Shown here: piece by piece, positions 19,860-64,000 of the stretch
How positions within the stretch are numbered: position 1 is the stretch's first letter
How the letters are laid out: each line of letters starts with the position of its first letter
Source of the DNA: Macrostomum lignano
Lineage: Eukaryota
Reading direction: 5' to 3'
Assembly: GCA_002269645.1 (NCBI GenBank)
Contig: NIVC01001210.1
Location: 124,001-188,000 of the forward strand
Length of the DNA: 64,000 nucleotides
The notes under the pieces: generated by a model
The model's input: the letters and a program-made list of their open reading frames with translations, nothing else
What the model was told of the DNA's origin: nothing
Database searches by the model: none
Translations under genes and position numbers: made by a program

Positions 19860-22029
19860 AACTATACTCAGCAACATTGAGAAGTCGCCACTCTATGCGC
19901 AGGTGAGCCATTTCTCTTGGATTATTATGAATTAACCTACAGAAAGTGCATTTCTCGCCTCTTTCGCAGTCTCATCCTTTTCCCGAGGAACAACAACTTC
20001 TATGGTAATTTATCGGTTGTAGGAGGACTGAGAACCATTTCTCAGTCCCCAAACGAGGCCTGAGAAATAGTTCTCAGTCCTGCTATAAACAGTCGTATTT
20101 AACAAATGTAAACCAACAACAGGAAGTTCAAATAGTAAGATTTAGAAGCGTCTTGTAAGCACTCACTCGAAAACGATTTCAACGGTGTTGGTGTTACCAT
20201 TGATGTTAAGCCTCATTTTCTTTGCAGGATTAGCAGTCACTACGTTACTTTGTTCCATAGCTTCAACAGAGCGTTCAGGCTCGGTGTCAATAGACAGACT
20301 TGATGACTGACCACCAGATTGAAGAGCATGCGATACTTTAACATGGTCTTGTACGTCAAACTGAATATAGCGCTCAATAGCTGTCGAAGAGTGTCCTGTA
20401 ACACGAGCGATGTCCTCTCTAGCAAAGCCAGCACGGTGTAGAGTACTTGCGCAAGTCTTGCGTAGAGACTGATTAGTGTACCTTTCAGTCACTCCAGTTA
20501 GGGGAGCCGTTAATTCACGAACAATACCGTCCAAGCTGTGCCGGCCGACGGGTGCGTTTTGGTACCACCTGCCTTGCTGGATGCTGGCATCGCTACGCAT
20601 CCAAGCCAGGAACAAATTCTGAACCGTACAGTTTTCCGGTCTTTTGTCCACATACAGCTTGTAGATGCAGGGTAGACATCTATCATGATCAGCAGTATGA
20701 GATGCTTTAACGGTTTTCAATGGAACAAAACGTCGCTTTATGCCAGCGTTGTTGGTCTTCGTGGCTCTGTTCTCACAGTAAACTAGAAGTTCTTGACCGT
20801 CTTCATGCTGCAACTGGATCTCACAGCTATATCTCAGACCATGCAGCTCCGTGCCTCCACGCAAAGCGAACTGCTTGCCAAGGTAGAACACAAGCGTAAA
20901 CAGCAGTAATTTCGGCGACGTTGTTGCAAGACGTCCTTTCTGCCACAACTCCTCCTCCAGAGTTGCGGGAATTGGGCTAGACGCATTTGTCCCCGGAACT
21001 AGGCCCTCTCTAGTAGCTTCTTTCATGGCAGCATCCAATGCCATTCTTGCATCCCTGTACGCAGCGTCCTTCCAGAGATTCAGTTCTTTCTTGAGCGTGT
21101 ACTGCAGATAGTGTTGCATCATGGAAAATATGTCCCTAAGGGTCGTAGCATTGTATTTAGTGCCATCGACTTTTCGCACCTCGAGAATGAACATCTTTAA
21201 TAGATAGTTCCAATCGCAAGCGTTCCATTCATGACGCTCCTTCAACACGAGAAGGCCAGTTGTATCACCATGTAGAATTCGATTGTGTCGCTGCTCAAAC
21301 CACTGGTCAAAAATTCTTACAGCCCATAGTTCCTTCCTTCGCGTATTTGGTGGGATAGCAGCGTCCAGCTTCCCTTGTATTTCGTCAGTCGAGAGCGTAG
21401 CGAATCGATCACTACCAGCAGCAGGATTCGTTGCAGCGGATTCTTTACTTTCAAAATATCGTAGCACTAGATCTAAGTCGTCTTCCATGGTTCTATTATA
21501 TATGCAAATGGATGGACTGCTCAGTGCTCCATCTAGGTAGACGATTTATAACACTTTAGCCAGTCAGTCACATAGCTTGTGCCATAGACTAACTGTACTG
21601 GATATTGATGCGTATTTTGCTTTCAGTAGGTTAAATATTTTCTCCTCCTTTTCCCAGTGTGGCTATGGAAAAGAAAGTCCTCGGATGATATTCTCAAGGC
21701 CTCGGCAGTCCGAGGATGCATTTCTCAGGCCGAGGCGAAGCCGAGGCCTTGAGAATATCATCCGAGGACTTTCTTTTCCATAGCCACACTGGGAAAAGGA
21801 GGAGAATGTATACCTAAAAGATACGAGAAAACTGATCGGGGTAGCCTTAACCCGTCCAACCCTCGCACACCGCTCCCCCCACTTCATTCCTCAACTCAAG
21901 TCTTCCGCGGCGTAGCTGAGTTGCGTCATTCGCAAAGATTGAGACTTTAATCTGCACTCTCAAAAGTGGCGATCACAGATGGAATCTTCTGTGATGGCGA
22001 CTTTTCGATGTTGCTGAGTATAACTATAC
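19860..22029 (-). mobile_element. Crypton-type (CryptonA/DUF3504-like) tyrosine-recombinase DNA transposon, apparently full length (about 2.17 kb)
   Basis: Single YR ORF. 28-bp inverted repeats at 19863-19890 and 21995-22022 (26/28 match). Direct repeat AACTATAC at 19860-19867 and 22022-22029. Internal hairpins at 20024-20081 and 21640-21806. No RT or gag. Confidence 0.8.
20163..21488 (-). CDS. Crypton tyrosine recombinase, 441 aa, intronless
   Basis: IPPNTRRKELWAVRIF N-terminal motif; FYLGKQFALRGGTE (catalytic Arg); TNQSLRKT (HxxR position); VTGHS...IERY (His and Tyr nucleophile); PAKKMRL NLS-like tail. Confidence 0.9.
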   Translation of the reverse strand: MEDDLDLVLRYFESKESAATNPAAGSDRFATLSTDEIQGKLDAAIPPNTRRKELWAVRIFDQWFEQRHNRILHGDTTGLLVLKERHEWNACDWNYLLKMFILEVRKVDGTKYNATTLRDIFSMMQHYLQYTLKKELNLWKDAAYRDARMALDAAMKEATREGLVPGTNASSPIPATLEEELWQKGRLATTSPKLLLFTLVFYLGKQFALRGGTELHGLRYSCEIQLQHEDGQELLVYCENRATKTNNAGIKRRFVPLKTVKASHTADHDRCLPCIYKLYVDKRPENCTVQNLFLAWMRSDASIQQGRWYQNAPVGRHSLDGIVRELTAPLTGVTERYTNQSLRKTCASTLHRAGFAREDIARVTGHSSTAIERYIQFDVQDHVKVSHALQSGGQSSSLSIDTEPERSVEAMEQSNVVTANPAKKMRLNINGNTNTVEIVFE

Positions 22030-22627: not shown

Positions 22628-23818
22628 TTATTTCTTCTCCAGCTCCTGTTCCATGCGGATGAGTTCAGTGATGCCCTTGAACATCTTGCTGACGGCGTCA
22701 AACTCAGTGAGTCCCATTCTTTCCCGGTTGGAAATGTCGTACATTCCGCCCACTGCCTCCGAGTGTTCACCAGCCGAGCCGCGTACTTGCAACTGGAATT
22801 TGTCGGCCACTTTCTGCAGCGCGTCGTGTCCGCCCTTGGCCAGCAGTGGCAGCTTGATGTGCACGGACGCCCTAATCGTGGTGCCCAGGTTGGTCGGACA
22901 GAAGGTGAGGAATCCCAGCCGATCGTCGTGGCTAAACTTCATCCGTTTGGCAATCTCTTCGACGCCCTTAACTAGTCTGGCGTACACTTCTTTGATGTTG
23001 CCGCCTTTCTGCATCGAGATGATGCGCATATGGTCCTCCTCGCCGATCCAAACCAAGAAGGTCTTGTTGTCGTTATGAAAGATTCCTCGACCAGTGGGCC
23101 AGTAGCGGCAAGCATTGGCGGCTTGCAGGAAACGGTCGCCCTCTTTGAACAAGAAGTGATCGTCGATGAGTTTCTGCTGCACATCTTTGGTCATTCCTGT
23201 CAGGGGATAGTAGGTACCCTTCAGCTCGCCAGAGAGTCCTTTTAGAGTGCTGGAGACCAGATCCTCCAGTTGCTTATAATGCTCCTGGGTCATGTTGGGA
23301 TTGAACGGGAACTGCTGAACGGAGCGACCGCAGCGGATTCGCGTCGACACGACGTATTTGCCCTGGGGATCGACGTCGCCAAACTTGTTCGGATCGCCCA
23401 TGGTGCACTTGGGGTGCTTGTCGGTCTTCTTGAAGCCGCCGTGGTAGTCTTGGATGATTGGATCGAACAGATCGGCAAACACGGTGTAGGCCTCGGCGTC
23501 TGGGGCGTACACACCGACGCCAGAGTCGAGGTTTTCGATGCCTATGACGGATTGAGGGTGGCAAGCTTTCAAGCAGGCGCTTCATTTGCTCTTTAGTTAT
23601 ATTTTTCATTGAAACTTACCCGACTGGATGACGTCTTTCAGGGTAGACCCGAAGGTTTTTGTCTTCAGATTCTTTAGATTGTCAAAGACTTCTTTAGTGA
23701 GGAACTTCTTCAGCTTAGATTTACAGGTGGAGCTGCTCTGCAGCTTCTTGAAGCCATCTTCCAGATACTTGAGCACGGCGGGGTCCACTCCAGTGACAGC
23801 CAGTGGGCATTTGGACAT
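22628..23818 (-). CDS. ArgK: Arginine kinase-type phosphagen kinase, single domain, 2 exons (23818-23620, 23541-22628), 370 aa
   Basis: Motifs [31 protein letters not shown] and CPTNLGT. The phase-1 intron TCG G|gtaagt...atag|GC ATC joins the two ORFs; total 1113 nt. Confidence 0.93.
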
Positions 23819-24522: not shown

Positions 24523-27500
24523 TTAACTGCCAATTAACAAGATCGCTGTTGCCGTTGCTATGCTGACTGTCTGAAATTGTAGCAGAGGAATTCTCCTTTT
24601 AATTCACGGTAATAATGACAATAATAGTAATAGCAATAGCAATATTTGTCCGACTGCCGTGCGTGTGATGACGCAACGACTTCGGCTCACAAGCAGCGTT
24701 GAGGCGATTCCGCCAAATTCCGCCGACCCCTGAGCACATACAAGCGCACCAATACTGTACGCAGGCTCACACTGTGCTTCTAATCGTCAGGCTTGTACAC
24801 TTTCTGTGCCGTGGGTGTTGGCTTCAATTAGTAGTTTTAAAGGCTCATCCACACTGCAATCAAATGAAAGACCAAATCACACGACTCGTTAGACCATACA
24901 GAATTTCTAACTTTTTCTGTGATCACTTGAAATCTCAGCTAACTTAGAATATTTTCAAATTCAGCGACAAAAGTTAATAACGCGAGGGCCAGTTGATCAA
25001 CTAAAACGCTGTACATTGGTCGCTTGCCTCCTACACAGCACCCCAAGTTGCGCAACACACAAAATTCAACTCAAGCCACTCTATTTCAACAACTCTCCGT
25101 TTAGTCTGACTGTCGTTTTAAAATTGATTGGCCATCTCACCAGTCAGGTTGTTAACTGTTTTATTTTTTTCCATCACATGAGCCAGGGGTCGGCAACCTC
25201 CGGCCCGCAGGCCACATGCGGCCCGCAAAGCCTCTTCATCCGGCCCTCGCGGTCCTTTGAAACTGCACAATAGCAATCCGGCCCGCTCGTTGTTTATCTC
25301 TTCTCAGCGCTCTTCTCTCTTCTCTCTTCTCTCCTCTCTCCTCTCCTCTCTCTTTCCTACTCTCCCTCTCTCTTCTCTTTTCTACTCTCCTAGTTAAATT
25401 CATCTCTCCTCTCCTCTCTCCTCATTGCCCCTTTATTCTCTCGCCTCTCCCTTCTCCTATCTCCCTTCTTTCTTTTTTATTCCCTCTCATCTCCTCCTTC
25501 GTCCGGACCGCAGTCATGCTCTAGGTTCTTTATCTGGCCCTTGGGGTAAAAAAGTTTGCCGACCCCTGCTCTATCTAGGTTCTTTTTCTGGCCCTTGGGG
25601 TAAAAAAGTTTGCCGACCCTGCTCTAGGTTCTTTTTCTGGCCCTTGGGGTAAAAAAGTTTGCTTGTAATCGATTAGAGAAAAAATGGTGTGAATGGGCCT
25701 TAAAAACGTCAAAATAAAGTGATAATTACCATTAGCGCTATTAGAAGGCTTCCCAGAACCAGCACAGGGGTTACATACTGGTCAATGTAGAGCCACAAAG
25801 CGTTATAGCAGGTCTGCGGGTTCGCATAAATGTGTTTTGTCTAACTTACTGACTGTCTAAGATTTGCAGCGTACAGTTCTAGGCACTAATTTTCTTCAGA
25901 TTCAAAGGCGTCACAGAGCTAATATTTTATCTTAATCAGTAGTGTGAAACAATTCCTTCTAACAACTACTTTGATATTTAATTGTAAGTAACGTATGCAT
26001 AATAGTTAGTATAGACCAGATTTCAATTACTTTAACTTTAAATTTGAGCGTATTTAGCCAATTAGCAGAGATTTTAAAGTGGAGTAAACCACACTCTGTC
26101 TTATTACTCCCGTGCTTTTGGATCAGTTTTCTCCAAGACAGTTCACTACTCTCATATTTCTATTTCTCATCAAATCTCAAATGAGTATGGCTTAGATTTA
26201 GATGGGATTTCTAGCGTCCAACTTTGCCACACAATGCTATTGCTATATTCCATAATAACAAATGCTCCATATCATTTTCAAAAATTTTAACTAACATTTA
26301 TAAAAAACCAACTACACACCAAAGCCTATATTACTGATGCAAACAACTCCATCAACATCTCACCTGATTGTTGACGCCAAAGTTTTCCTCTTCAAATATG
26401 CAGGAAATTTCTTCCATGCTGTCGTACATTTGGCTCACATCGAACTCGTTGGCAAGCAGCTTTTTAATGCCCTCCATCTGACAGCAGGTCAGAGGCGTGC
26501 GCAACACCAGAGCGCTGTCCAGAGCCTCTGTGACCGCATTCACAGTTTCAGTAACAACTTCCTCAACAACTTCGGTGAGGCCCTCGAAAAGATCCTCATC
26601 AATTTCGAAGCCGCCAGGCAGCATGTCCGGCACAGCATAATCAGGCGGCATCGTCAGCTCCGGAGGCACGTCGTAGCGCATCCAGTCCGGCTGGGCTTGC
26701 CCGCCTCCAGCTCCGCCAGACGCACCTGAGCCGTAGTCCGAGTAATCAAATATTGTGTAGTCGTACATGTCGCTCTGTATCGCAGACCGTCTGTACCTGG
26801 CCTCAAACAACCCCTCGTACAGGTAATCGTAATCGTTGCTATTCTCGCCATTCATAGAGCTTGCGTACAGGTCCGCCCCAGCCGCCATCAGCTGCATGAG
26901 GCGTCGCTCTGAATTTTTCCAGCTGGTGCTGTTACGAGCGTCGCCTACATTGCGGATGCCGCAGCATCTGAGCTGGTGACGAACAAAATGTACAGAGGTT
27001 TAAAGGTACAATTTTATTTTAACTTCTCTAGTGCGAATTAGATCCCAACTTCTCTAGAGCCCAAGAAACAAATTTCCCAATAGGCTTTCTTTAATTTCTA
27101 CAATCCATTCAAGAAAGTCAAATATATGCTTTTGTGGGGCCAACTGCTAAAATAGAGCAAATTTGAACCAACTAATGGTACTGACACAGCTATTCATTTT
27201 ACGGCTATTGTGTGACAGACTTTCTTCACAAGAGCATGCACAGATACTGAAATCGTGAGTTGTCTTTTCAAAACTTCAATGTGTACATAGAATTCAAAGT
27301 GTGTGTAGCTGAGTGTTCTGAGTGCATAAATTCTCATGGGCGATATGGTAATTGGCTGGCTTAATATATTTTCATACTTTATTCGCCAAACTTACTCACC
27401 GAAAAATGCATGAAGTTGACGGCTAAAGTGAGCATTGCCTTGACCGTACTGTTGTTTTGTACGAGTTCAATTACTGAAACAAAGTATTTGTCTTGAAGTT

Positions 27501-28101
27501 TAAGCATTCGGTCCTTCATTTTTTCCGCGATCCGCTCCTTGAAAATACCGCAGTAGACGACAACGCCAAGAATTGCCATCAGCAGGATGCTCATCAGACC
27601 GGTGTACTGCGGTTCAATTAAGTCACTTCATGTCTAAAGTTTTGAATTCAGGCAAACAAAGCATTTTATTATTTCCTAAAGACTCACCACGTAAAGAACG
27701 AACTTCTGCAGCATGCACGCTCCCGCCAATCCTAGGGTGGACACGAGGCTCACCAGAAAGCCCAGGGCGATGAAGGCCATGCCAACTCTAGAGATTACGT
27801 CATACTTGTCGATTAAATCTCCCACATCTTTCTTGTACTTTTCGAGCATTTCCATTTCGCCGACGTCGATCAGGTTGATCATGGAGCGCAGTTTGGTCTT
27901 ATTGGCCAGAATGCCGACGCCGATGCCTCCGAGAGCCAGTCCGATCAGCAGGGACAGGCTGCATATTATAATGAGAGCGATGCGCAGCGCCAGCTTCACT
28001 GAGCAAGTACACGACTTGCAGCGTTGAGCGCAGGAGCTGCAGCATTGATTCTGTAATTTTGAGCTCAAGGAGGATTTACTGTTCGCGGCTGGCGCAGGCA
28101 T
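24523..28101 (-). CDS. Tetraspanin C, atypical with enlarged LEL; 5 exons (28101-27688, 27606-27400, 26972-26364, 25813-25730, 24570-24523), 453 aa; start codon uncertain
   Basis: Four hydrophobic segments, LRCCG, TPLTCC and TCY. All introns are phase-0 GT-AG at the same positions as in tetraspanin A; total 1362 nt. Confidence 0.87.
25184..25660. mobile_element. hAT (Charlie-like) MITE 25184-25568 with tandemly reiterated right end
   Basis: Left TIR CAGGGGTCGGCAACC and right TIR TTTGCCGACCCCTG (25568). The right-end block of about 53 bp repeats again to about 25621 and partially to about 25662. Confidence 0.8.
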
Positions 28102-28921
28102 AAGACTCAAGTTGTCTGCTGGCCTTGTTTCAGCGTCATTTAAGTTATTGGCTTCTCAGGTGCTCAGACTTAATGAAATATTGAACAGTAAGAGTTTTAA
28201 TGATGCTCCGGAATTTTTTATTGACACGGCTATAGCAAAGATGTTTTGCTGACAGACGTATTGAGTTGCTAATCGTTTGCCGAGTAGTGTCTACGGGTTA
28301 AAGCTTGTTGACTCGAAGAGTTCATAGAGGAACACGGAAGTTCTATGCAGCGATTATTGAGCCAGTTTTGTAAAGCCAACGTGGCTATGAAAACTTGGTC
28401 CCCATTTTTTAAAGTTACATCTGGGAGTTTGCTTTTGATAAGTCTGTGCAGCGTCTGGTACTGCCCAGAAAATACGATGCCTACTTTACTTCATCAGCTA
28501 AGGAACAAGTTCAAACGATCCCGTCAGGTCATTTTAGATAAGCGATACTCCATGAGCTTTGGCATCTCAGCAATTAACCTGAGAAAGTCGTCACGAGTCT
28601 TGTCATTTAGGTATATATTAGGTGAAATTATTTGATTTTTTTCAGCAAAAGCATTATTTCACTATGAGTTAATTTTTCTCAGTCTAACCAACAATAACTA
28701 AATAGCAACTCCTTAGCAAGAAGTAGAGATCAGTCTTAGAGATCAGGACTAACTACACTGCTTTTGCAGTACAGTACAATACAATACGATACAAGAAATC
28801 AAAAACGATCAATTGCAAAATAATTTTCCTTTTACAATTTCTTACAGTGTATTTCTGGAGAAAATTTGTCAGCACACAGGGTGCTGGAACTCAATAAAAA
28901 TAACAAAACATTTTAAGACCC

Positions 28922-30939
28922 TCAGGTTGAGTTCTCAAGGTTAATAATTCCAAGCGCCAGTGCCGTGCTGACTGCCTGAAATAGAAATGCTTTTTTTAGT
29001 AAAGCCTTTTAAAAGTTGCATCCTCTTTGCTGCAAAAAAACTAACATGAAAATTCACCATTAGGATGATCAGAAGGCTGCCTAGGGCCAGGACGGGAGTG
29101 ACGTATTGGTCAAGGTAGTTCCAGAGAGCGACGTAGCATGTCTGAAGGTTGTGTGAAGATTTTCAATGTCTCTGTTCTGGTAATCTAGCATCCAGTGCGG
29201 TCTGGAACTGATCCAGACAAAGCCCAACAAGGATACTTTCATGTACTAAAGACTCAATTACATTTATTCTACCTTGCCGCCGCTTCCTTCTGATATCTTA
29301 ACGATCTGTTAAATTGGAATCAAAATTGGCACAGAAGACTCACCTGATTGTTGACGCCAAAGTTTTCCTCTTCAAATATGCAGGAAATTTCTTCCATGCT
29401 GTCGTACATTTGGCTCACATCGAACTCGTTTTCAAGCAGCTTTTTGATGCTCTCCATCTGACAGCAGGTCAGTGGAGTGCGCATCACCAGTGCCTCGTCC
29501 AGGACCTCTGTGACCACTTTGACAGTTTCAGTAACAACTTCCTCAACAACTTCGGTGAGGCCCTCGAAAACATCTTCATCAATCTCGAAGCCGTCGGGCA
29601 GCATGGTGGGCACAGCATAGTTATCCGGCATCTCGAGCTCCTCAGGTACGTCGTAGCGCATCCAGTCCGGCTGGCCTTTCCCGCCTCCGCTGCCTGAATT
29701 ATCAAATATGGTGTAGTCGTACATGTCGCTCTGTATCGCGGACCGTCTGTGCCTGACCTCTGATGAGACCGCATAATCGTAGTCGCTAGTCTTAGTGCCT
29801 TGGAACAGGTCTGCGCCAGTCTCCATCAGCTGCATGATTCGTCGCTCCGACTTCAACCAGCTGGTGCTGTTACGAGCGTCGCCTACTTTGCGGATTCCAC
29901 AACATCTGAGCTGTTGATTTCGATGGAAAGAGCTTTGCATTAAATAAGAAATTGTCAGTTCGCTCCCTACTGAAATTACCCTTGATATTTAAGCTTGATT
30001 GCAAAATGTTAGCACTCACCGAAAAATGCATGAAGTTGATAGCCAAAGTCAGCATCGCCTTTTCAGTTTCTTTGTTACTCAAGAGTTCCACGATAGAGAT
30101 GAAGTATTTGTCCTGCAGTTGGTGCATCCGATCCTTCATTTTATTGGCGATCTCTTGCTTGAAAACACCGCAGTAAATGACAACACCGAGGACAGCCATG
30201 AGCAGGATGCTCATCAGACCGGTGTACTGGCGGGGTCAAAATTAAACATGATGAAATTTTCGTTCTTCATTCCGAGGCTGTTATTTTTTTCTGTAGTGAT
30301 ACTTTAAAGTCTTTTTGTTTGCGCAACGTAGCTAGATGATATGGTTTAAGTAATCTGTCACAGTCAAATCCTGTTTTCAGAATTTACTAGCAATCCAATG
30401 CCTCCTTTCGGGGCGACCAATAAGCAAGGAGCAAAAATTATCATGCAAATCCATTAAAAATACACATTTTCCTGAGAACAAATTACTTCTTCAGTTTTAA
30501 TAGATCACCTTATTCGAGTAAATCTGTTATGGACAAAGATTTTTGCTATGAATATCTTTTTTCTAGAAGTAACACTTCTTCATCACGCCTACATGTAGTA
30601 GAAAACTTATATACCTTAACTACTCACCACGTAAAGAACGAACTTCTGCAGCATGCACGCTCCCGCCAATCCTAGGGTGGACACGAGGCTCACCAGAAAG
30701 CCCAGGGCGAGGAAGGCCATGCCAACTCTAGAGATTACGTCATACTTGTCGATTAAATCTCCCACATCTTTCTTGTACTTTTCGAGCATTTCCATTTCGC
30801 CGACGTCGATCAGGTTGATCATGGAGCGCAGTTTGGTCTTATTGGCCAGAATGCCGACGCCGATGCCTCCGAGAGCCAGTCCGATCAGCAGGGACAGGCT
30901 GCATATTATAATGAGAGCGATGCGCAGCGCCAGCTTCAT
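28922..30939 (-). CDS. Tetraspanin B, atypical with enlarged LEL; 5 exons (30939-30628, 30226-30020, 29910-29344, 29141-29058, 28975-28922), 407 aa; start codon uncertain
   Basis: Paralog of C with LRCCG, TPLTCC and TCYVALW. Phase-0 GT-AG introns; total 1224 nt. Confidence 0.87.
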
Positions 30940-31261
30940 TGGGCAGGTGTCCGACTGAGGTCCTCGTTTAGCAAGCACACCCAAGTGGCTATGCGTTTGT
31001 CGTTCTCAATCCAAGCGTTTGAATTTAAACACATAATGGTTCCTCAAAAAATCAGAATTTCGCAGTGTCTTCCAGGTTTATGGTAAAACTCATGATGTTT
31101 GACGGCTATGATTTGAGCGCGATAAAAGTTGTTAAGCTGATTTCGACTTCCGGTCACACTAGCATTTTGTCTTTGGCAGTTTAGAGAAAGTTTTGTAGAT
31201 ATTAATTTATCATCTATCATCATCTTTCGCTCAAATGCGACTTAAATATAGGTAATTGTAA

Positions 31262-31543
31262 GTAGTCTAGTCGTTAGAACATCGGACTCATGACTGAAAG
31301 GTCAGGGGGTTCGATTCTCGACCCACTCGGAACAATTCGGGTCCTTAAGCAAGACACTTAACTCTACATTGCTTCAGTTCACCCAGCTGTAAAATGGGTG
31401 CCTAGCTGGAGTAATTGGGGGTGTGTGTGGCAGCCCCCCCCCCAGTCCTTGGACTGAACAGCCGTACGCAGCCTTCAGATGCGCCTGAGCTGTCGTTTGC
31501 ACATCTGCCCATTGGGGCGGCTGTAATCCATTATTATTATTAT
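31262..31543 (+). mobile_element. tRNA-derived CORE-like SINE, copy 3
   Basis: Aligns to the 13090 copy: GGTTCGATTCTCGAC, CCTTAAGCAAGACACTTAACTC...CAGCTGTAAAATGGG and an (ATT)n tail. Confidence 0.85.
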
Positions 31544-33596: not shown

Positions 33597-35555
33597 TCAG
33601 TCCTTCGGTTCGATGGCCCTCACCAGGCAGCAGGCCACGATGATGCAGAATAGCTGCAATGGGATTTTTATTGGCTCATTTTGATCATAAATTCTCATTA
33701 AGTCTTGTAGAAGTATTTCAATCAAGGATCTTCCGAACCTTCTGAGCTTTACGAGAGTAGGAACGCATGTAATAATGATGTTTATGCGTTGCGGAAATTA
33801 TTTATTGAAAGCAAAAGACTACAAATTCGCATGCCTGTGACGTATAGAGTTAAATAACAAATGACTCACCTCAAACACGGCGATGCCAGCGCAGACGCCA
33901 ATTAGTGGCCCGGCAAACTTGCCGATGAAATCCATGATGCCACTGTAGCAAGTCTGTAATTCAGTTGGGGGGATTTTCCAGTATTGTCATTCCTAAAGAA
34001 TGACGCTCTCGCTTGACACACGGAGAGCAGTAGGTTCATATAGAACAAACTTACCTTAGTGTGCTGCGTGGTGCCAGTAAAGGGGCAGCTGGGATCCACT
34101 AGAGTACCATTGAGTTTGGAAACCCAATTATAGCCTGGGGCAGCGGCTGCAGTCTTTTGATCCTGGCGAATCTGGCAGCAGGTGATGGGCGTTTGAAGCT
34201 CGCGGCCCTCCCAGCTGCGGTTGGACAGGAGCCAGCTGCTGCTGTTGGCAATGTCGCCTGGCTTTTTGGCTCCGCAGCAGTCGAACTGAAGCAATTTTGC
34301 AGAGAATGTCATAGCCAGCAGTTTAATAGAATACTGACAGAAGGCCTAAACCTTTTGACAGGACACCAATAAACAATCAAACAAATTAATTCTTGACAAT
34401 GGAACTCTCGATTCGTACAAAGCGATGGCTAAAACGCTGAGACACACCGTCCAGCTCCCTCTCTTGGTCTCCCAGGGGATAAAGGGGATAATTGGTATCC
34501 AGTGAAGTCCGTTTGGTCCAAAGCTTTACTTTGGGCCCTCTTTAGAGCCATAAGTTGACACCCTCTTTGTGGTATTTTAACATTTCAGCATAATTTATCG
34601 TATAAAGTTCCCACCCTGCAATAGATGCGCAGAAAAGCTCACCGACATCTGCAGATAGTTGATCAGGGTTGTAACAGTTTTATTATTATCGCTAGTTGAG
34701 TCGCTTAGGTAGTCGGTCATAGCTACGAACATCTTCTCCTGCAGGCCGTACATGCCGTCTTCGGCGGCGGTGCGGATGCGAGCCTGGTACACTGCAGCCA
34801 GAATGGCAGCGGTGACCTCCACAGCCAGCACCAGGCCGACCAGGAAGGCGTACTGCGGACGGTTGGCGGGAACGTAATCGCATCGAAGTACCATAATATG
34901 TCGCTATGTTAGTTGAGTCTAGGTAAGCTTTCAACAGTAGAAAACGTATAAGATCAAAATAATCTACTTAAGTACTGATGGTATATTCATTCAAGGATTG
35001 ACACCTACTACATGTTTACAGTCGTAAAATATACTAGCTATATAGAGCACGACTAAGAGCTGTGAGCGCGAAAGGTGTTGGTTAGAAACTGTCAGAGTTT
35101 TCAATAGTGGGATGTCAATTATGTGAGTGCTAAATGTCCTGCGACGCGAAAGCGAACCATGTGCCCTTTTATCCCACCGGCTAAACCAACGTAAAATTTA
35201 AGAGCTCTGAGCCGTACAAAACCAGCAAACAAACCCTCACCATTCCCAGCAGGCACTTGGACTCTTTGACGGCGCCGCAGCAGCCGCAGAAGCCCACGAC
35301 TAGCGTGAAAGCGCCGATCCCGATGAGAATGAATCCGGCCACCGTGACCAGGCCATTCTGATTGGCTACCGAGTCTATCTGGCCCTTGTTGTCGCCCTGA
35401 TCCACTCGGGCATCGATTAGATTGATGACTCGAAAAAGGTCGCTCTTGTTGACGGCAACCCATATTCCCACGCCGACGCTGGCGGCTCCCAGCAGGAAGA
35501 AGACAATATTGAAGATGAAGAGAATCATCTTCGCTAGAGACGTGCTGCAGCTCAT
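33597..35555 (-). CDS. Tetraspanin A, canonical; 5 exons (35555-35241, 34852-34643, 34285-34055, 33953-33870, 33653-33597), 298 aa
   Basis: N-terminal MSCSTSLAKMILFIFN, GFCGCCGAVKESKCLL, FDCCG, TPITCC and a C-terminal ACCL. Total 897 nt, all phases consistent. Confidence 0.93.
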
Positions 35556-42832: not shown

Positions 42833-43873
42833 ATGGCGTCATTCCAGCAGCCATTCACCATGCAGCTGATCACAGCTGATGGCGTGTCACTGCTGCCAGC
42901 TCACACTATCATTACTAGTGCTCCTGCCGACTTTCTCCGCAAAGATGGCCAACCAATTCAAGTGACAACAACCTCTGGCGGCTATGCTCAGGCAATTGAG
43001 GTCAAGCCTGGCCAAGTCCTGTCTGGCCAAGTACTATCTGGCCAAATTCTGTCTGGCCAGATGCTTCCAAGCCAGATGCTATCTGGCCAAGTCCTGCCTG
43101 GCCAAGTGCTGAGTGGCCAGATGCCTCTGACAGCTGGGTCGCGCGATTTTTTTGGCCAGGCTGGCCAGCACGTGAAGCTGCAAGCTTTGCCGCATTCCTT
43201 CATCATACCGACTGCTCAGCTGCTGCCCCAGCAGAAGGTGGAAGCTCAGCAGCCTGGGGTGCCGCAGCAGCAGGCGGCCCATCATCAGCAGCATCAGCAG
43301 CCGCAGCAGTGGGTCAAGACTGAGCCCGGCGGTGCTGTCGTGGCTGTTCCGATGCCCCAGCAGCAGCTGCAGCAGCAACAGGCTCAGCCAGCCGGAGGCT
43401 TGCCCTGCACCACCTGCGGCAAGATTGTGGCTGACGCGGCTAAGCTCAAGCGGCACATGGCGACGCACACGGCGGAGGCGGCCGCTTCGGCTGGCGCATT
43501 TCCCTGCGAACACTGCGGCAAAGCCTTCGGCTCCAGCTACAGGCTGCGGCGGCACGCCGTCATTCACAGCGACGCCAAGCCGTACACCTGCCCGACCTGC
43601 CACAAGGCCTTCAGCCGGTCCTACAGCCTCACCACCCATATCAAGATCCACAGCGGCACCAAGGACCATCGCTGCAGTTATTGCGACAAGGCCTACGCCA
43701 GGTCCGACCACCTGCGCCGGCACATCCTGCACGCCCACACGCCGGGCGGCGCGCCGGCCACGCATCGGCCGCCGGCGGCCAAGAATTTTATGTGCCCAGT
43801 GTGCGGCAAGGCCTTCTCCGACTCGTCGCACCTGCGCCGGCACATGCGGACCCATCCGGGCCAGACCGTCTGA
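42833..43873 (+). CDS. C2H2 zinc-finger protein with 5 fingers and a Q-rich N-terminal half, 346 aa
   Basis: CTTC..H..H, CEHC, CPTC, CSYC and CPVC fingers with TGE-like linkers (SDAKPY, SGTKDH); single ORF. Confidence 0.92.
   Translation: MASFQQPFTMQLITADGVSLLPAHTIITSAPADFLRKDGQPIQVTTTSGGYAQAIEVKPGQVLSGQVLSGQILSGQMLPSQMLSGQVLPGQVLSGQMPLTAGSRDFFGQAGQHVKLQALPHSFIIPTAQLLPQQKVEAQQPGVPQQQAAHHQQHQQPQQWVKTEPGGAVVAVPMPQQQLQQQQAQPAGGLPCTTCGKIVADAAKLKRHMATHTAEAAASAGAFPCEHCGKAFGSSYRLRRHAVIHSDAKPYTCPTCHKAFSRSYSLTTHIKIHSGTKDHRCSYCDKAYARSDHLRRHILHAHTPGGAPATHRPPAAKNFMCPVCGKAFSDSSHLRRHMRTHPGQTV

Positions 43874-53556: not shown

Positions 53557-64000
<10,444 letters not shown>

Follow-up and report, generated by a model that had tools for sequence, protein, structure and literature searches.

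A tetraspanin subfamily of Macrostomum lignano with a long insert in the large extracellular loop

Tetraspanins are usually viewed as small, compact organisers whose extracellular head varies only within a tight disulfide scaffold. A polar Asn in the first transmembrane helix (TM1) and a Glu or Gln in the third (TM3) are typical of these proteins, if not universal, and in the photoreceptor pair PRPH2 (RDS) and ROM1 the tetraspanin fold comes with an unusually large second extracellular loop, which mediates dimer and oligomer contacts and in PRPH2 holds seven cysteines. Published large extracellular loops (LELs) measure 69-132 amino acids (aa) in proteins of 200-300 aa, and the variable region of the LEL holds nearly all known tetraspanin interaction sites (PMC2650405). 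The CD63-like group (CD63, TSPAN7, and Sm-TSP-2) is marked by six LEL cysteines in the pattern CC-CC-C-C and by phase-0 introns at ancestral positions 1-6, TspanC8 proteins have eight cysteines and a different intron set, and RDS/ROM genes keep only ancestral intron 6 (PMC2650405). Here, we describe two neighboring tetraspanin genes of Macrostomum lignano, B and C, whose products carry 120 (B) and 134 (C) extra residues in the LEL, and compare them with a nearby tetraspanin gene, A, that lacks this insert; all three lie in a stretch of 64,000 nucleotides (nt) of contig NIVC01001210.1 (positions 124,001 to 188,000; assembly GCA_002269645.1), hereafter the window.

Gene models built by hand from the minus-strand translation reproduced what a first-pass annotation of the window had proposed, namely that A, B, and C each consist of five exons with identical intron positions, with an exon 3 of 231 nt in A, 567 nt in B, and 609 nt in C and an exon 4 of 84 nt in all three; the introns (12/12) are of the GT-AG type, in phase 0, and equivalently placed. 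The insert lies within the LEL between the CCG and PxxCC motifs, flanked by SW..SER(R) on one side and TP(L)TCC on the other, and the coordinates first given for it proved exact (Table 1). Retention of the canonical cysteines was confirmed in the alignment, where B keeps CCG (C176-C177-G178), PxxCC (P319, C322, and C323), and the later C350 and C364, in columns that are invariant or nearly so in 61 tetraspanins, and A, 2.7 kb from the insert-bearing genes, serves as the un-inserted control. Measured on this 61-sequence alignment, the CC-to-CC spacing is 144 residues in B and 158 in C; A has 31, and the range over 56 other representative tetraspanins is 16-49 (median 30.5), in keeping with the earlier statement that the variable region of a normal LEL is short, and the LEL as a whole comes to approximately 239 aa (B), 253 aa (C), and 128 aa (A) against 79-135 aa in the same 56 representatives. 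The LEL of B and C is about twice the usual length, and both the loops and the proteins (407 and 453 aa) exceed the published ranges. We regard these sizes as an anomaly of interest and not as grounds for exclusion from the tetraspanins; the loop length of B and C is far beyond chance.

A phmmer search with B as query against 1.84 billion representative sequences (clustered at 50% identity) returned 78 tetraspanin matches at E below 1e-3, only three of which have extra loop sequence, all from M. lignano: a fused B+C model, PAA79579.1 (369 aa, 35% identity), and PAA88730.1 (473 aa, 29% identity), the latter two encoded on other contigs than B and C. No insert carrier was found outside M. lignano among these representatives, behind which Macrostomum orthologs more than 50% identical to an M. 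lignano representative would be hidden, and the closest non-M. lignano matches comprise TSPAN18/Sm23-like proteins of normal length from molluscs and rotifers as well as unnamed transcriptome contigs. The inserts of the two distant paralogs, 83 and 99 residues long, occupy exactly the same site as those of B and C, and the four lineages have in common a SERRLxEL entry, a triple-proline motif (PDW..xP....xP....xP.GxxIxxDF) whose Pro columns are invariant, and a return helix before TPxTCC, although only the C-terminal 60-80 residues of the insert are conserved across the subfamily. When the inserts alone were compared by BLASTP, B matched PAA88730.1 at E=1e-10 and PAA79579.1 at E=3e-4, and the two paralogs matched each other at E=3e-3. 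In a neighbor-joining tree of 268 columns outside the insert, B, C, PAA79579.1, and PAA88730.1 form a clade in 200/200 bootstraps, to which A-like and PAA65122.1-like M. lignano tetraspanins are sister, and CC-to-CC spacing across the clade is 106-158 residues against 16-49 in the 56 other tetraspanins. Given the shared site, the shared motifs, and the fully supported clade, the insert arose a single time, in the common ancestor of at least three gene lineages that have since diverged deeply, and judging from the sequences the subfamily is old enough to have diverged to ~30% identity. The proposal in the first-pass annotation of a lineage-specific subfamily is upheld by these results, and the homology searches that it had suggested for the insert and the full proteins brought up insert-bearing relatives in M. 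lignano only and, for the insert, no Pfam or PDB match.

The genes of both distant paralogs retain a 207-nt exon 2 and an 84-nt exon 4, and each has an extra intron inside the insert near PDW(L/M)K, in phase 0 after LMKP in PAA79579.1 and in phase 2 within the Lys codon in PAA88730.1, that is absent from B and C. Either this intron was lost in the B/C lineage or introns were gained in the others, as far as the gene structures indicate, and a loss in B/C would suit a scenario in which the exons flanking an intron were both extended and the insert grew in this way. At the PAA88730.1 locus (L008 14397-14755 and 15474-15832) two exons of 99 nt and 84 nt are perfectly duplicated in tandem, either as an assembly artefact or as a recent duplication, and the GenBank model reads through both copies, giving the 473-aa 'partial' protein a duplicated TM4 segment. 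Another M. lignano contig, of 314,527 nt, encodes the inserted PAA79579.1-type protein PAA75744.1 and the un-inserted A-like protein PAA75750.1, whose accessions are six apart, and the pairing of inserted and un-inserted genes may thus recur at a second locus.

All three proteins exceed the cut-off of Pfam Tetraspanin (PF00335; 32.1 bits), A with 148.2 bits over its full length and B and C with 68.5 and 54.3 bits, the best stretch of the latter two covering profile positions 2-152 only, as the match is broken by the insert. The AlphaFold2 (AF2) helices of B and its structural matches to tetraspanins predict the usual topology of four transmembrane helices, one small extracellular loop, and one large one. 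B and C share with the CD63-like group the six LEL cysteines in the CC-CC-C-C pattern, as seen in the alignment (PMC2650405), and their introns agree with it in phase (phase 0, 4/4). They differ from that group in LEL length (~239/253 aa vs 69-132 aa), in CC-to-CC spacing (144/158 vs 16-49), and in having no TM1 Asn, TM3 Glu, or TM2 motif of the GCCGA type on inspection of the sequences, all of which A has (the Asn being N16). The un-inserted M. lignano paralogs (A = PAA58388.1, PAA65122.1, PAA89688.1, and PAA79624.1) have in common with B and C the genome, their sister position, the exon plan with its 84-nt exon 4, and the anchors SW..S.R and TPxTCC, and differ in a spacing of 31-34 residues as opposed to 144/158, with an overall identity of 24-26%.

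Foldseek searches with the predicted structures of B and PAA79579.1 returned tetraspanins only, with PRPH2 as the best match of both models (7zw1_A, E=1.3e-3 and 2.7e-4), followed by Tspan15, CD53, CD9, CD81, and uroplakin. By sequence, however, TSPAN7, CD9, and CD81 are closer to the family than PRPH2 is, TSPAN7 being the best PDB sequence match of the family profile (E=1.4e-42, against E=1.6e-15 for PRPH2), and membership among the peripherin/ROM proteins is ruled out, despite the top structural match, by that weak profile match and by the four phase-0 introns of B and C, where RDS/ROM genes keep one. B and C further differ from PRPH2 in having six LEL cysteines and a much longer loop that is predicted to be partly disordered. 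The likeness to TspanC8 (Tspan15-ADAM10) and uroplakins Ia/Ib, which are among the structural matches (8esv_B and 8jj5), is that these too are tetraspanins, with a variable LEL region given over to the docking of a single partner; they have compact loops that are folded throughout and lack the long acidic or disordered segment of B and C.

The reading frame is open throughout exon 3 of B and C, the three indels between them (4, 2, and 8 codons, all in the acidic spacer of the insert) comprise whole codons, and ~25 of 81 synonymous against 44 of 282 non-synonymous sites differ between the two inserts (Fisher p=0.0035; dN/dS = 0.45). Positions 23597-45555 of the window match NIVC01001210.1 (L001) at 100% identity, and a second contig, NIVC01001845.1 (L003), bears all three genes again at ~98% identity, which fits the known redundancy of the M. 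lignano assembly (PMC5730564); against this copy, exon 3 of B has five differences, three of them in the insert and all at synonymous third positions (p=0.004), and exon 3 of C has none in 609 nt whereas the surrounding 5.3 kb differs by 1.4%. No GTRAG donor is present within either insert, the sole one in exon 3 sitting downstream of TCC, and the GenBank coding sequences of the copy, PAA63420.1 (407 aa) and PAA63421.1 (453 aa), match our models with the insert kept, in an annotation derived from RNA-seq transcript assemblies and not from ab initio prediction (PMC5730564). Because of the open frame, whole-codon indels, synonymous bias, missing donor, and transcript-derived coding sequences, we conclude from this sequence evidence that the insert is coding, translated, and under purifying selection. 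The splicing out of the insert as an intron, raised in the first-pass annotation as what would overturn it, is not borne out by any of these indirect lines, on which we reject a retained intron. An annotation artefact of this kind, which would leave the mature proteins with a short loop of normal size, could appeal to the unreliable gene models at the locus (a chimera of B and C in GenBank, fusions of the two in UniProt) and to the real introns within the homologous region of PAA79579.1 and PAA88730.1, but with those introns removed the paralogs still have 83-99 coding insert residues, and we hold it to be highly improbable. It is rather unlikely, too, that the expansion is functionally neutral, with low-complexity or formerly intronic sequence fixed in a length-tolerant loop and kept only for its open frame. 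Such an origin would account for the insert having the highest dN/dS in the protein (0.09-0.22 elsewhere) and all B/C indels, is compatible with exon extension at the intron found in the distant paralogs, and would fall in a region of the LEL known as a hot spot for new introns and variability (PMC2650405), but dN/dS in the insert is significantly below 1, paralogs at ~30% identity still have the prolines, PDW, DF, and the return helix in place, and changes between exon 3 of B and its 98% copy are solely synonymous. Tandem Repeats Finder detected no array in exon 3 of B or C, which rules out an origin of the insert by tandem repeat expansion.

The nature of the inserted sequence was assessed from an AF2 model of B based on the 61-row alignment, with a mean predicted local distance difference test score (pLDDT) of 79.6. 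The four membrane helices (2-32, 68-96, 99-125, and 364-406) and the canonical loop helices are predicted at pLDDT >90, and the insert runs from a short helix through residues 211-252 without regular structure and a Pro-rich coil (255-284) into a second, long helix (scores in Table 1); the model of PAA79579.1 has the same order of elements, with an insert pLDDT of 51-75 and helices equivalent to the return helix of B at residues 251-278. The SERRLxEL start of the entry helix is common to B, C, and both paralogs, and the predicted disordered acidic spacer is the variable part of the insert, short or different in the distant paralogs. Net charge of the insert is -18 in B and -20 in C, with 6 and 11 Tyr, mostly next to Asp (SDYDY, DMYDY, and FDYSDYG), and 3 (B) and 5 (C) of these have at least three acidic and at most one basic residue within 5 positions on either side, making the spacer a candidate for tyrosine sulfation. 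Sulfotyrosine-bearing acidic binding segments occur in the N-terminus of PSGL-1, the N-termini of chemokine receptors, and the hirudin tail. The spacer resembles these in being extracellular or luminal, predicted to be disordered, rich in Asp/Glu, and in placing Tyr next to Asp; this is a likeness in composition only, without homology, sulfation being a candidate from sequence context, and the feature is absent in the distant paralogs. No Cys occurs in the inserts of B and C, no Pfam family matched the insert at E up to 1, and its best PDB sequence match, Nop9 at E=1.4, is meaningless, which rules out a known domain. The 'whole extra domain' of the first-pass annotation goes beyond the evidence: ~40 consecutive residues of B are predicted at pLDDT <50, and the AF2 model has no compact fold. 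A novel, autonomously folded extracellular domain on the tetraspanin head would be consistent with the conservation of the C-terminal 60-80 residues between paralogs 27-35% identical overall and with a pLDDT of 66-87 for the Pro-rich motif and long helix of B, but we find it unlikely in view of the disordered stretch, the low scores of the whole PAA79579.1 insert, the missing Cys and beta structure, the 35-45% coil, the failure to match Pfam or the PDB, and an N-terminal half that is length-variable and low in complexity. In the models, the insert has the appearance of an acidic arm, disordered in part, and not of a compact folded domain.

Taking these observations as a whole, we consider it probable that B and C are members of a CD63-like tetraspanin clade that is restricted to Macrostomum and has the Cys pattern CC-CC-C-C, and that in this clade an enlarged first variable sub-loop of the LEL forms a disulfide-closed, partner-binding arm. 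The sub-loop between CCG and PxxCC has grown from ~30 to 106-158 residues, laid out as an entry helix, a variable spacer, the triple-proline motif, and an amphipathic return helix of 25-30 residues leading to TPxTCC. Because the conserved CCG/PxxCC disulfides would pin both of its ends, the insert would stand out from the tetraspanin head like a stapled arm whose stalk would be the two helices, entry and return, and whose tip would be the spacer, and as predicted from the models this arm would probably not fold on its own as a globular domain. In B and C the tip would be intrinsically disordered and strongly acidic, its D-Y motifs being good candidates for tyrosine sulfation in the Golgi. Tetraspanins bind their partners through the variable LEL region, and the arm would therefore most likely serve as an enlarged partner- or ligand-binding surface, whose acidic tip would capture a basic ligand electrostatically. 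The main alternative mechanism is that the helical stalk could pair tetraspanins with one another after the pattern of PRPH2-ROM1, whose loop contacts offer a plausible analogy for such a stalk.

Several points weigh against this reading of the arm. The evidence for translation is indirect, from sequence comparison and annotated coding sequences, which also counts towards an artefact of annotation, and the AF2 alignment has some five informative rows for the insert, so that confidence in its predicted structure is weakly founded. A full-text search for the gene identifiers and look-ups in supplements of M. lignano papers turned up no expression, localisation, or binding data for these genes. 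Only B and C have the acidic D-Y stretch, while the inserts of the distant paralogs are near-neutral, Tyr-free, and provided with N-glycosylation sequons, and sulfation therefore cannot be the common mechanism of the subfamily. The faster evolution of the insert, at the sequence level, also fits a merely tolerated expansion. Pairing of the CCG/PxxCC disulfides is assumed from other tetraspanins, and pairing of the two insert helices is putative. The boldest version of the stapled arm, in which the loop would be the longest LEL described for any tetraspanin and a so far unrecognised disulfide-stapled module would make the tetraspanin, otherwise an organiser of other receptors, a receptor or adhesion molecule itself, with a sulfotyrosine-rich tip in B and C or with stalks driving B-C hetero-oligomers as in PRPH2-ROM1, is possible but on balance doubtful.

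Table 1. Features of the tetraspanin genes A, B, and C and of the loop insert, in window coordinates
Feature	Position	Strand	Description	Basis
Gene A	33597..35555	(-)	canonical tetraspanin, 298 aa	gene model
Gene A exons	35241-35555, 34643-34852, 34055-34285, 33870-33953, 33597-33653	(-)		
Gene B	28922..30939	(-)	insert-bearing tetraspanin, 407 aa	gene model
Gene B exons	30628-30939, 30020-30226, 29344-29910, 29058-29141, 28922-28975	(-)		
Gene C	24523..28101	(-)	insert-bearing tetraspanin, 453 aa	gene model
Gene C exons	27688-28101, 27400-27606, 26364-26972, 25730-25813, 24523-24570	(-)		
B insert	29479..29838	(-)	I198-R317, between SWLKSERR and TPLTCC	gene models, alignment
C insert	26499..26900	(-)	L232-R365	gene models, alignment
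B CCG	29896-29904	(-)		
B entry helix	29803..29844	(-)	short predicted helix, RRIMQLMETGADLF, residues 196-209	AF2 helix 198-209, pLDDT ~62-83
B acidic spacer	29671..29802	(-)	rich in D-Y motifs, residues 210-253	pLDDT <50 at 211-252
B Pro-rich motif	29566..29670	(-)	conserved, PDWMRYDVPEELEMPDNYAVPTMLPDGFEIDEDVF, residues 254-288	invariant Pro columns in four lineages; pLDDT 54-79
B return helix	29479..29565	(-)	long predicted amphipathic Val/Glu-rich helix before TPLTCC, residues 289-317	AF2 helix 285-313, pLDDT 79-87
B TPLTCC (PxxCC)	29461..29478	(-)	loop-closing motif	
C CCG	26958-26966	(-)		
C equivalent of entry helix	26865-26906	(-)		
C equivalent of acidic spacer	26691-26864	(-)	14 residues longer than in B	
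C equivalent of Pro-rich motif	26586-26690	(-)		
C equivalent of return helix	26499-26585	(-)		
C TPLTCC-type motif	26481-26498	(-)		

The product of A is an exact match to M. lignano PAA58388.1/PAA70723.1, the protein of B is 99% identical to PAA63420.1, and C has the length and exon structure of PAA63421.1 with a near-identical sequence. Exon 5 of C lies 1.16 kb beyond exon 4, behind repeats, and the intervening intron 4 (24571-25729), 1.16 kb in length where B has an equivalent intron of 82 nt, contains 2.9 copies of a 54-nt unit (25517-25662) and CT-rich microsatellites (25310-25469). At the position of the B start codon C has GTG, and its start is an upstream ATG (28101), which adds a Cys-rich N-terminal extension of 34 aa (NQCCSSCAQRCKSCTC; window 28036-28101) with likely palmitoylation sites. 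The fused UniProt models place an acceptor at 28050/28051, within this extension. In M. lignano, ATG is the 3' end of the spliced leader (SL; PMC8629364), and trans-splicing at this site would bring the SL ATG in frame with C (M-NQCCSS...). Signals of the AATAAA and ATTAAA type lie ~100-120 nt upstream of the ATG of C (window 28201-28227). Given these poly(A)-type signals, the possible SL trans-splicing, and a gap between B and C of 820 nt, below the 1-kb operon threshold of PMC8629364, the two genes may form an operon-like unit.

Several public models of the locus are wrong. GenBank has no correct model of B on NIVC01001210.1 (window 24523-30939; L001 14617-21033), and its PAA70722.1 (419 aa) on this contig joins exon 1 of B to exons 2-5 of C, skipping the rest of B, while UniProt A0A1I8JCT8, A0A1I8GFX2, and A0A1I8GD49 (793, 778, and 798 aa) each run B and C together as a single protein; the copy on NIVC01001845.1 is split correctly into models of 407 aa and 453 aa. 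Divergence between B and C is a mosaic, with dS of 0 in exon 1, ~1.05 in exon 2, ~0.34 in exon 3 (0.17 after TCC), and ~1.9 in exon 4, and exon 1 with its flanks is 97.9% identical over 335 nt (27682-28016 vs 30622-30956); this mosaic suggests recent gene conversion between B and C of exon 1 and the 3' end of exon 3. Directly downstream of C lies a minus-strand phosphagen (arginine/creatine-type) kinase gene (22628-23572 and beyond), whose GenBank product matches PF02807 and PF00217. Elsewhere in the window, a 1309-aa open reading frame (ORF) at 56296-60225 (-) has by eye the look of an LTR-retrotransposon gag-pol, with a CCHC zinc knuckle and reverse-transcriptase- and integrase-like stretches; further ORFs are found at 20163-21488 (441 aa) and at 42833-43873 (C2H2 zinc finger), and 31260-31500, in which ARAGORN calls no tRNA, resembles the tRNA-derived head of a SINE with a conserved core after it.

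No published description of the insert or the subfamily, and no already described tetraspanin family with the same insert, the other result that the first-pass annotation had said would speak against it, was found in the literature searched. GenBank and UniProt already list proteins of the B/C type under the names "hypothetical protein" or "Tetraspanin", in several cases as wrong models, and a locus mis-annotated with chimeric and fused public models would mislead family surveys. What is new here is the insert and the subfamily, seen in one genus, while the tetraspanin family itself is well known; structural biologists working on tetraspanins and researchers on Macrostomum should find it moderately interesting, and it has no bearing on a long-standing open question. 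In an animal amenable to RNAi and transgenesis, the subfamily provides a naturally occurring case of loop grafting onto a tetraspanin, together with a candidate for a self-contained binding module. A clade that doubles the head through a single sub-loop, with un-inserted sister genes as controls, shows how far the tetraspanin scaffold stretches.

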